A stretch of DNA of 63,166 nt, the filler included, from Octopus bimaculoides (taxonomy: Eukaryota): NCBI RefSeq assembly GCF_001194135.2. It is 10 parts of 9 records of this genome, joined end to end, with 100 filler letters (N's around TTAATTAATTAA, not from the genome) between each part and the next. Parts side by side here need not be neighbours in the genome. Positions count along the whole stretch, not along the records: positions 1 to 11,474 come from NC_068998.1; 9 more parts are not named here. One strand, given 5' to 3'. Under the pieces are notes generated by a model. The model saw only the letters and a program-made list of their open reading frames with translations. It searched no databases and had not been told where the DNA came from. Positions 7,706 through 9,664 of this stretch are shown piece by piece. Position 1 is the first letter of the stretch. Every line of letters starts with the position of its first letter. The position numbers were made by a program, and so were the translations under genes.

Positions 7706-7769
7706 ATGATATATCAAAGATTACTCCAGCTGGCCATCTTCATGGCGATAATTCTTCAGGTACCAGCTG
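7706..7769 (+). CDS. Signal-peptide exon of the tandem-knottin gene
   Basis: ATG at 7706, hydrophobic core LLQLAIFMAIILQV, and a perfect G|GTAAGT donor whose phase matches the exon at 9294. Confidence 0.8.
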
Positions 7770-7897
7770 GTAAGTTTATCCTCATTTCTCACATTTATTT
7801 TTCTTGCCTATCTGTGTATTAATTAGACATTTCTGCCTATTGACAATGATAATCATTTCTTTTGCTGCAGAATTTAACAGAAAACAGTTAATCAATG

Positions 7898-7928
<31 letters not shown>

Positions 7929-9664
7929 GACTAGTGACCGAGAATCTTTGGCGATATGCTATGCTTGAGAAAACCCATCAAGCCAAGTGAAATCGTTGTG
8001 GTTGATGCTTGTGTCACATAAAAAGCATCTTTCATACATTTGGCCTCACAGAGGCAATGACGAATGACCAAGACCTTTGGCATTATGCCATGGTAGAGAA
8101 GAAGACCCATCAATTCAAATAAAATTGGCAGATACTGGGGTCACGCAAATGGCACCCATGCTAGAAGTACGTAAAAGCACCCATTACACTCTTGGAGCAG
8201 TTAGCATTAGGAAGGGCTTCCAGCCATAGAAACCATGCCAAATCAGACTGGAGTCTGGTGCAGCCTTTCAACTTGCCAGCCTGGTCAAGCCATCCAACCA
8301 GTGTCAGCATGGACAGTGGATGTTAGATGATGATAGATAGATAGATAGAGATTATAATAAAGTGTTTCCACTGCCCTTTTAGACACTTCATATGGCGCAC
8401 TAAGTTCCTAGTTTGATCAGTTATCTGTGGAATGGTTTTGCAAATGCAGCAATTTTTAGAATGGTCAGTGGATTGGAAGAATCATCGGGGTATCAAACAA
8501 AATGGCATTTGTTCTGGTCCTTTACATTCTGAGATCAAAGCCTGCCAGAATCATCTTTGCTTTTCACATATCTCCAAGGTTGATAAAAGAAAGAACCAAT
8601 GAAAGTACTGGGGCCATTGGTCTTAATGAAGTCTCTTCCCTTAAAATTGCTGGCCCTTGTGTCTAGAGTAAGGGCTGTGAATTGTCAGAATTGTTAGAGA
8701 ATCAGACAAATGCCTTGTGGTATTTAGCTATAACTCTTTGTTCTGATTTCAAATCATGCCTTGATTAATTTTTGTTTTTTTATCCTTCCAGGATCGACTC
8801 AATGAAGTATCAGTCAAATATTGTGATTGATTTAATCAGTTAACTCCTTCCTTCTCCCGCACCAAAAAGAATTAAATCTGTCACCTTGGGACTATGTTAG
8901 ACGTAATCCCTAGAACAGGGATTTATCAAATGTCTACGCTTACTAATGAAGGATTGAATTAGCTTGCTTATCTTTTCAACTCCTTTCATCCGTTTTTTCA
9001 TAACATGTCAACCAGTTCGTTCCTAGGTTTAAGGGCCAGCAGACATTGCCTCCTGGAACGTCTTGCTGCCTAAACCTGCTTTATAAAGTATCTTCCTAAC
9101 CGACACCCAAATTTCTTGCAGAATATTCCATTGCCATCACCGCTAATGAGCAGACGAGCAGTTTGACATAGTCATTGCTGAATATGATAAATTACTATTC
9201 AATGAATGCATGAAATATATTTTGTTGTTGATCTGAAGTTGAAACAATAATAATAATAATAATATTTTGTCTTCTTGCATTTTGGTTTTCTAGGAAGGAA
9301 ATGTAAATGGTCAAATGAAGATTGTTCAGACGATTCTGAATGTTGTAGTCACCAATGCAAACAAGCACATCCGGGGACAAATTACAGATGCACTCAGAAT
9401 CCAATGAATTACGCCTGTATTTACGACTATCACTGTGTTACTCGACTGATCTGTGGCAGCGACCAACGCTGCTGTGCTGGTGAATGGGGTGACTGTATGC
9501 ACAACTCGCATTGTTGCGACCCTGCTCACAATTGTATTGAAGTCAAAGGCTTCATTTATAAACGTTGCCTTGAAGGAAAGACTATACGAACAGCAACAGT
9601 TTCGATTGTAGCCATAAGCCATTGCCTCCTTTTCTCACTTGGATTGTGGTTAATGTCATTTTAA
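7706..9664 (+). CDS. Two-coding-exon gene (join 7706..7769, 9294..9664): 144-aa secreted, membrane/GPI-anchored cysteine-rich tandem knottin (ICK)-like protein
   Basis: Exon 1 reads MIYQRLLQLAIFMAIILQVPA-G| and ends at a phase-1 GTAAGT donor (7770). Exon 2 follows the acceptor ttggttttctAG (9292-9293), also phase 1. The joined CDS is 435 nt, in frame, with a stop at 9662-9664. It has 16 ectodomain Cys (C6C5CC3C10C / C5C5C5C / C6C5CC5C10C) and a hydrophobic C-terminus. Confidence 0.85.
9294..9664 (+). CDS. Cys-rich ectodomain plus hydrophobic anchor exon of the tandem-knottin gene
   Basis: Open frame RKCKWSNEDCSDDSECCSHQC...CLEGKTIRTATVSIVAISHCLLFSLGLWLMSF*, with regular Cys spacing and an upstream AG acceptor. 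Confidence 0.9.

Follow-up and report, generated by a model that had tools for sequence, protein, structure and literature searches.

A conserved molluscan gene of Octopus bimaculoides encoding a probable surface-tethered protein of three knottin-like modules

The window analysed here is a stretch of 63,166 nt drawn from the genome of Octopus bimaculoides, and positions below are window coordinates on the + strand unless another locus (L009, L010) is named. At 7706-9664 it holds a gene with two coding exons, whose product is probably a surface protein made of three modules resembling knottins (inhibitor cystine knot, ICK, peptides) and tethered by a glycosylphosphatidylinositol (GPI) anchor. 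The start ATG at 7706 is followed by a 64-nt open stretch up to the donor CTG/GTAAGT after 7769; the acceptor, TTTTGGTTTTCTAG/G, lies before 9294, its pyrimidine-rich tract ending TTTTCTAG/G at 9293/9294, and the stop TAA is at 9662-9664. Joining 7706-7769 to 9294-9664 gives a coding sequence (CDS) of 435 nt with one terminal stop and a product of 144 aa (Table 1). The mechanical list of open reading frames (ORFs) reports exon 2 alone, as a 129-aa ORF at 9275-9664 opening at TTG, and the earlier note on this DNA was right that it misses the true start. The join proposed there was also correct: its borders are GT..AG, its phases match, and its product is identical (100% identity, 100% coverage) to UniProt A0A0L8G3G9 of O. 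bimaculoides. The gene is not hidden by splicing, as had been supposed, since the spliced model is already public under that accession. It is a real two-coding-exon octopus gene, already annotated and unstudied; the protein is uncharacterised and carries the automatic name 'Granulins domain-containing protein'.

Table 1. Features of the gene, with the cysteine spacing of each module and the ICK positions (Cys I to VI) that its cysteines occupy
Feature	Position	Strand	Residues	Description
Coding exon 1	7706..7769	+		64 nt, ends in phase 1; signal peptide MIYQRLLQLAIFMAIILQVPA and first base of Gly22
Intron	7770..9293	+		1524 nt, GT..AG; holds an (AT)14 microsatellite and one copy of an interspersed repeat
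Coding exon 2	9294..9664	+		371 nt including the stop; entire mature protein and C-terminal signal
Module 1	9302..9391	+	C25-C54	Six Cys, ICK-type framework: C25 (I)-6-C32 (II)-5-C38 (III) C39 (IV)-3-C43 (V)-10-C54 (VI)
Module 2	9416..9472	+	C63-C81	Four Cys: C63 (II)-5-C69 (III)-5-C75 (V)-5-C81 (VI); Cys I absent, V70 at the Cys IV position
Module 3	9473..9568	+	C82-C113	Six Cys, ICK-type framework: C82 (I)-6-C89 (II)-5-C95 (III) C96 (IV)-5-C102 (V)-10-C113 (VI)
C-terminal 30 residues	9572..9661	+		EGKTIRTATVSIVAISHCLLFSLGLWLMSF; short polar spacer and hydrophobic end, no cytoplasmic residues

The splice model was compared with the loci of other molluscs. The O. vulgaris locus is colinear with the window, and its orthologue of exon 1 keeps the ATG, the frame and the GTAAGT donor, with three synonymous changes and one Ile->Leu replacement; indels relative to the window (9, 11 and 6 nt, and a 2-nt gap) only flank the exon. 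Exon 1 is thus under coding constraint in O. vulgaris. In Mytilus coruscus the first coding exon is likewise 64 nt long and is followed by a GT..AG intron of 399 nt in phase 1; exon 2 then stays open across the entire Cys-rich domain and on into a hydrophobic tail with the end ...ISF. A Crassostrea paralogue also has two exons separated by a phase-1 intron, and in a Biomphalaria paralogue the phase-1 intron is retained, two residues ahead of Cys I, alongside two additional introns. The orthologue of the cuttlefish Sepia esculenta (59% identical, 144 aa) is a single unbroken ORF in contigs of ~1 kb from eight listed runs, one of which, SRR20545806, is documented as whole-juvenile S. esculenta RNA-seq (PMC9538352). 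At the level of sequence comparison, the 7769/9294 junction is thus supported by the identical annotated protein and by the conserved phase-1 intron. All family members align by tblastn to exon 2, and no second family copy was found within the window by that search. An exact look-up of the octopus protein among assembled contigs returned no record, and an Rfam scan of the gene's piece gave no match.

The M. coruscus protein in the database, at 163 aa, has a splicing error towards its 3' end that leads into a low-complexity repeat, and the genome (L009 10001-10064 joined to 10464-10900) encodes a normal module 3 and hydrophobic tail, 145 aa. Biomphalaria glabrata LOC129923198 (L011) has four coding exons spread across 21 kb, one extra intron falling exactly between modules 1 and 2 and the other within the last loop of module 3. 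The Sepia contigs (L001 versus L002, L003 and L005) agree from a CT-rich tract downstream and differ upstream of it, which suggests alternative exons of the 5' untranslated region (UTR) or assembly chimeras; the 5' UTR of S. esculenta is at least 420 nt long.

A profile search of 1.8 billion representatives recovered a family of 43 representatives, 37 of them with E<1e-10 and nearly all 130-215 aa long. The named members, as distinct from unnamed Logan, ENA and JGI homologues, come solely from molluscs: cephalopods (Octopus, including a second paralogue, A0A0L8FII8, and O. vulgaris), gastropods (Biomphalaria with two loci, Bulinus, Elysia and Haliotis) and bivalves (Mactra, Mytilus and, with two loci, Crassostrea virginica). 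All are 'uncharacterized' or automatically named. Every one of the 16 ectodomain cysteines is invariant or nearly so (at least 90% of sequences, among 35-43 aligned homologues); the tail cysteine, C132, is not conserved. The octopus and Mytilus proteins are 40% identical, and motifs beyond the cysteines are kept from octopus to bivalves, namely C-K-W-S-N-E-x-C, H-P-G-T-x-x-R-C, W86 and G-F-x-Y-K-R-C-L. The full-length database identity and the 16 conserved cysteines together argue that the cysteine pattern is not due to chance. Literature searches (GPI, knottin and mollusc; O. bimaculoides knottin; endogenous mollusc ICK; six member LOC ids) found nothing on this family, so that the family, its architecture and its probable GPI tether are undescribed as far as we searched, the gene model itself being known. 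In one homologue, P0073 (a Logan contig, 188 aa), an N-terminal Sushi/CCP domain (PF00084) replaces the signal peptide; this fusion could be real, or the transcript could be partial or chimeric.

Between O. bimaculoides and O. vulgaris the ratio of non-synonymous to synonymous substitution rates (dN/dS) is 0.10 over the full CDS and 0.07 over the ectodomain, values that place the gene under strong purifying selection. Venom peptides usually show a diversifying pattern, and a dN/dS of 0.07-0.10 favours an endogenous role over one in venom.

The cysteine spacings listed in the earlier note match the translated product exactly. Modules 1 and 3 each carry six cysteines in the C-C-CC-C-C order of the knottin framework, and module 2 has four only. 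The latter had been described as a four-Cys CxxDxxC linker; its four cysteines are invariant, the Asp is not conserved, and the segment repeats the secondary structure of the units on either side. The DSSP string of the ectodomain model reads strand, strand, short helical turn, strand and β-hairpin, three times over. The supposed linker therefore looks like a third module that lacks exactly Cys I and Cys IV. Under ICK pairing these two form one disulfide, so module 2 would keep II-V and III-VI, the arrangement known as the disulfide-directed β-hairpin (DDH). This suggests that module 2 is a two-disulfide, DDH-like version, with putative pairing, and the loss of exactly one ICK cysteine pair is an indirect hint at ICK connectivity. 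Compared by hhalign, modules 1 and 3 align weakly but in register over all six cysteines (P=0.011), and no sequence similarity was detectable between module 2 and modules 1 or 3, so the three-module reading draws on the predicted secondary structure and the positions of the cysteines.

AlphaFold2 models were built with the family alignment and compared by Foldseek with the PDB, 50 matches being listed for each model. The full-length model has a predicted local distance difference test score (pLDDT) of 92.6, and that of residues 23-118 a pLDDT of 93.8 and a predicted template modelling (TM) score of 0.79. Neither model gave a Foldseek match to the PDB at E<=0.001. Local matches over 20-41 columns link the models to solved structures of knottins and ICK peptides, including Magi4, psalmotoxin, hanatoxin, maurocalcin, EETI-II, conotoxin GXIA and engineered knottins, with a root-mean-square deviation (rmsd) of 0.4-2.9 Å, a target TM score of 0.59-0.77, a probability of at most 0.92 and E-values of 0.18-5; for psalmotoxin, hanatoxin, Magi4, EETI-II and GXIA the rmsd is 0.7-2.6 Å. 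A PDB sequence search with the ectodomain found no match at E<=10.

In Pfam the octopus protein matches Toxin_29 only, with 13.4 bits against a curated cut-off of 25, and thus reaches the gathering cut-off of none of the ICK toxin families. Across 35 family members the recurrent sub-threshold matches were Toxin_12 (15/35), Toxin_29 (8/35) and Toxin_27 (7/35), all of them ICK toxin families, with best E-values of 2.3e-5, 0.0019 and 0.0062; these weak matches fall on module 1. The same 35 members gave no match at E<=10 to Granulin, Dickkopf, Colipase or UPAR_LY6. The loop lengths, 6/5/0/3-5/10, are of the ICK type, and the C-C-CC-C-C framework can adopt a mini-granulin fold when all loops have 2-4 residues (JBC 2024, PMC11035057). 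The proposal of ICK-like units at the two ends of the ectodomain thus fits the framework, local structural matches and weak profile matches, with no significant Foldseek match in the PDB and no Pfam score above cut-off. Taken as a whole, the models point to an ectodomain that probably consists of three tandem knottin-like modules, the outer two with a putative knotted pairing of I-IV, II-V and III-VI in which III-VI passes through the ring.

The best structural matches anywhere came from BFVD and were predicted 'transmembrane proteins' of metagenomic Pithovirus-like giant viruses; with one of the models, for example, A0A481ZBW3 superposed at an rmsd of 2.0 Å over 64 columns and A0A481Z975 had E=6e-4. 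Invertebrate iridovirus proteins were also found there and, weakly, baculovirus conotoxin-like proteins. To judge from these predicted structures, giant viruses may also have membrane proteins with tandem knottin-like repeats.

Only the N-terminal 21 and the C-terminal ~20 residues of the octopus protein are strongly hydrophobic. In the signal peptide, residues 6-18 form a hydrophobic core behind Arg5, and small residues occupy -1 and -3 (VPA/G); a signal of this kind is also present in Sepia, Mytilus and most homologues. At the other end, 69 family sequences, scanned heuristically, had a median tail of 37 aa and a median of 3 residues past the uncharged segment. The tails diverge in sequence and share one form: a spacer of ~10 residues in which Pro, Ser, Ala, Gly and Asn are frequent (PSSAS, PSAA, NSG, SSG), followed by a hydrophobic run of 13-20 residues that closes the protein. 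The GPI-like spacer and hydrophobic tail with no cytoplasmic part, first noted in the octopus protein, therefore recur family-wide. The octopus tail has the form of a C-terminal GPI signal, with Gly116 as the best candidate for the ω site, and we judge it likely, by about three to one, to be such a signal rather than a plain membrane anchor.

Our preferred reading, to which we give a probability of roughly 0.6, is that the gene encodes a GPI-tethered triple knottin-like surface protein acting as an endogenous binding module, not a venom. Exon 1 would supply a cleavable signal peptide, and exon 2 the 92-residue, 16-Cys ectodomain and the C-terminal hydrophobic signal. The precursor would enter the endoplasmic reticulum, where its modules would oxidise to form eight disulfides and the C-terminal signal would most likely be swapped for a GPI anchor, Gly116 being the candidate ω residue. 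The outcome would be a rigid, compact three-module array on the outer face of the plasma membrane, able to bind a conserved partner (a channel, a receptor, possibly a protease) in cis or in trans. In this scheme we infer the disulfide connectivity, the GPI anchor, the surface location and the binding function.

Several observations count against this reading. The ω region of the octopus protein (EGK/TAT) is less canonical than that of many relatives. All Foldseek E-values against solved structures are 0.07 or higher, and among the matches listed the lowest belong to colipase and Dickkopf (Dkk) proteins, not to knottins. AlphaFold can mis-assign disulfide connectivity in peptides of this kind (PMC11035057). 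Finally, the annotated O. vulgaris models of the same 90% cluster, CAI9735764.1 and CAI9735765.1, skip the 64-nt exon and use a distal 5' exon that lies 21 kb upstream of the main exon and ends in phase 1; one O. vulgaris model (136 aa) is without a signal peptide. The distal exon may be an alternative first exon or promoter, or an annotation error, and the choice leaves the mature protein unchanged. A search for this alternative N-terminal exon in the window found it absent there; its orthologous site (L010 10001-10123) lies ~2.6 kb past the left end of the window.

Of the other explanations, the one that survives best, though we consider it unlikely, differs only in the tether and takes the hydrophobic C-terminus as a permanent single-pass or tail-type membrane anchor. 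The full-length AlphaFold2 model has a terminal helix at 126-143, the uncharged stretch of the octopus protein is 24 residues long, its ω region is not textbook, and some relatives (such as P0004, P0008 and P0028) have 13-37 residues past the hydrophobic segment. Set against this, most members stop 0-3 residues past a hydrophobic stretch of 13-20 residues, with no basic stop-transfer residues, and have a cluster of small residues ~10 residues upstream; in this they resemble GPI signals, and a type I protein would be unusual with such an end. Tails that run longer are possibly gene-model errors, as in Mytilus.

Far less probable is a secreted toxin or defence precursor (venom or antimicrobial), from which a C-terminal propeptide would be removed and the modules perhaps freed singly. 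Such a role would suit the sequence-profile similarities, found solely with ICK toxin families of spiders and scorpions, the presence of the tandem ICK toxins DkTx and Hi1a among the Foldseek matches listed, and the fact that cephalopods and many gastropods are venomous. It is made unlikely by the dN/dS, which is far from the diversification of venom peptides, by the conservation of the protein in non-venomous bivalves and by the lack of dibasic cleavage sites between modules, two of which, 2 and 3, adjoin directly at C81-C82. The single copy in the window and the expression of the orthologue in whole juvenile cuttlefish also speak against it.

Just as improbable is an ectodomain of the colipase, Dickkopf or prokineticin type, with the protein serving either as an LRP ligand of the Dkk type or as a cofactor at lipid interfaces. 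Such a structure was named in the earlier note as one that would refute the knottin reading, and the outcome goes half-way towards that: the smallest E-values in Foldseek, 0.07-0.23 across 80-105 columns, go to colipase (1lpb, 1lpa, 1eth) and Dkk4's N-terminal region (5o57); the LRP6-bound Dkk1 chain 3s8v_X also matches locally, at an rmsd of 1.3 Å over 31 columns. The long alignments, however, have an rmsd of 9-15 Å, TM scores of 0.26-0.32 and probabilities below 0.5. Moreover, the octopus protein has 16 cysteines against 10 in colipase and Dkk, none of the 35 members scanned matches either Pfam profile at E<=10, and the model is a three-fold repeat rather than the two-lobed arrangement of colipase. 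Membership of this group is rejected, as cysteine count, profile and global superposition all fail.

A divergent granulin-like protein, with stacked β-hairpins, laddered disulfides and a growth-factor-like module, is if anything slightly less probable still. Several members bear the automatic granulin name, the C-terminal half shows a granulin-like spacing (CC-6-C-5-CC-5-C) and an 'HCCDP' stretch, and the C-C-CC-C-C framework can take the mini-granulin fold; the loops here, however, have 5-10 residues rather than the 2-4 tied to that fold (PMC11035057). The 12-Cys granulin pattern is unmatched, Pfam Granulin (PF00396) is among the profiles that none of the 35 members matched, and the 50 Foldseek matches listed for each model include neither a granulin nor a mini-granulin structure. 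Granulin membership is rejected on cysteine pattern, Pfam and the Foldseek matches listed, and the name 'Granulins domain-containing protein' is unsupported by the tests made here, the octopus protein reaching the cut-off of no Pfam family. Membership of the Ly6/uPAR three-finger group is likewise rejected, with no UPAR_LY6 match and no three-finger protein among the Foldseek matches listed.

If the protein is the GPI-tethered binding module that we favour, its conserved surface residues would point to a specific protein partner. Since its only sequence echoes are channel-directed ICK toxins, we rank first, tentatively and by analogy, a modulator of channels or receptors (a 'prototoxin'). A tethered protease inhibitor seems about half as probable, and other binding roles take the remaining share. 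A prototoxin role like that of lynx1 is plausible but conjectural. In a more speculative reading, which we hold doubtful as a whole, the protein would be a natural mollusc counterpart of engineered tethered toxins, an ancient GPI-anchored ICK array that modulates channels or receptors of its own or neighbouring cells; it would then form a knottin-fold parallel to lynx1/Ly6 and possibly the stock of secreted molluscan ICK toxins of the conotoxin O-superfamily type.

Around the coding exons, a putative upstream ORF (uORF) of 22 codons at 7641-7709 (MQILHSSPTFPLSLLPSSSSSL and stop) terminates at a TGA sharing bases with the start codon of the main ORF (ATGA); the O. vulgaris copy keeps its frame despite a 9-nt insertion and has the same overlapping stop. 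A (CAT)n run lies immediately 5' of the start codon. An interspersed repeat of ~160-180 nt has two copies in the window, at 4766-4921 and, within the intron, at 8155-8334, and both match several places of the O. vulgaris locus in either orientation at 73-77% identity; the repeat has no counterpart in Rfam. The (AT)14 microsatellite of the intron is at 7901-7928, and (GA)24 and (GACT)11 tracts lie upstream of the gene at 3775-3823 and 2990-3035, respectively. In O. vulgaris, a gene for a histone-fold protein (136 aa, PF00125; L010 35713-36123, minus strand) lies ~4.3 kb downstream of the orthologue, beyond the right end of the span orthologous to the window.

Among known systems, modules 1 and 3 share framework and loop lengths with the ICK knottins (spider, scorpion and cone-snail toxins and squash-type inhibitors), and as in these the C-terminal β-hairpin carries Cys V and Cys VI. 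ICK knottins are free, secreted, 30-40 residues long and usually fast-evolving, whereas the octopus protein has three fused modules and a putative membrane tether, and belongs to a family conserved across Mollusca, under purifying selection and below every curated Pfam cut-off shown. The double-knot toxins DkTx and Hi1a also have several ICK modules in one chain, which makes bivalent binding possible, and Foldseek listed 6cuc and 2n8f; these matches are weak (E 0.34-1.9, rmsd ~10-13 Å), and the toxins are venom products of two modules with a flexible linker, with neither a membrane anchor nor a two-disulfide middle module. Cys-rich domains of colipase and Dickkopf proteins share with the octopus ectodomain a disulfide-rich architecture of β-hairpin 'fingers' and a similar size.

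Non-venom relatives in form exist as well. Honeybee OCLP1 is an endogenous, non-venom, toxin-like ICK peptide with a signal peptide (PMC3737499), and the conotoxin-like (CTL) proteins of baculoviruses, a weak structural match here (E>1), are likewise ICK-like outside venom. Both are encoded in ordinary genomes and are single modules, secreted and untethered, unlike the three modules and putative tether of the octopus protein. The lynx1/Ly6 prototoxins and engineered GPI-tethered t-toxins would follow the same logic as that proposed here, a small toxin-fold domain held by GPI near channels or receptors, and peptide toxins engineered with a tether demonstrate that this principle works (PMC7056315, PMC6502960). 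The fold of lynx1/Ly6 is the three-finger LU domain as opposed to an ICK-like one, with no sequence or Pfam relation found, and the likeness is one of analogy, not of membership.

The ectodomain, at ~92 residues and highly conserved, is a compact object for structural and receptor work. To our knowledge, nearly all known ICK domains occur in free, secreted form, as toxins, inhibitors or hormone antagonists. If the reading proposed here is true, three fused ICK modules held at the cell surface would be a new use of the fold, and the family would be a candidate endogenous, non-venom ICK lineage in the very phylum of the conotoxins and the cephalopod venoms.

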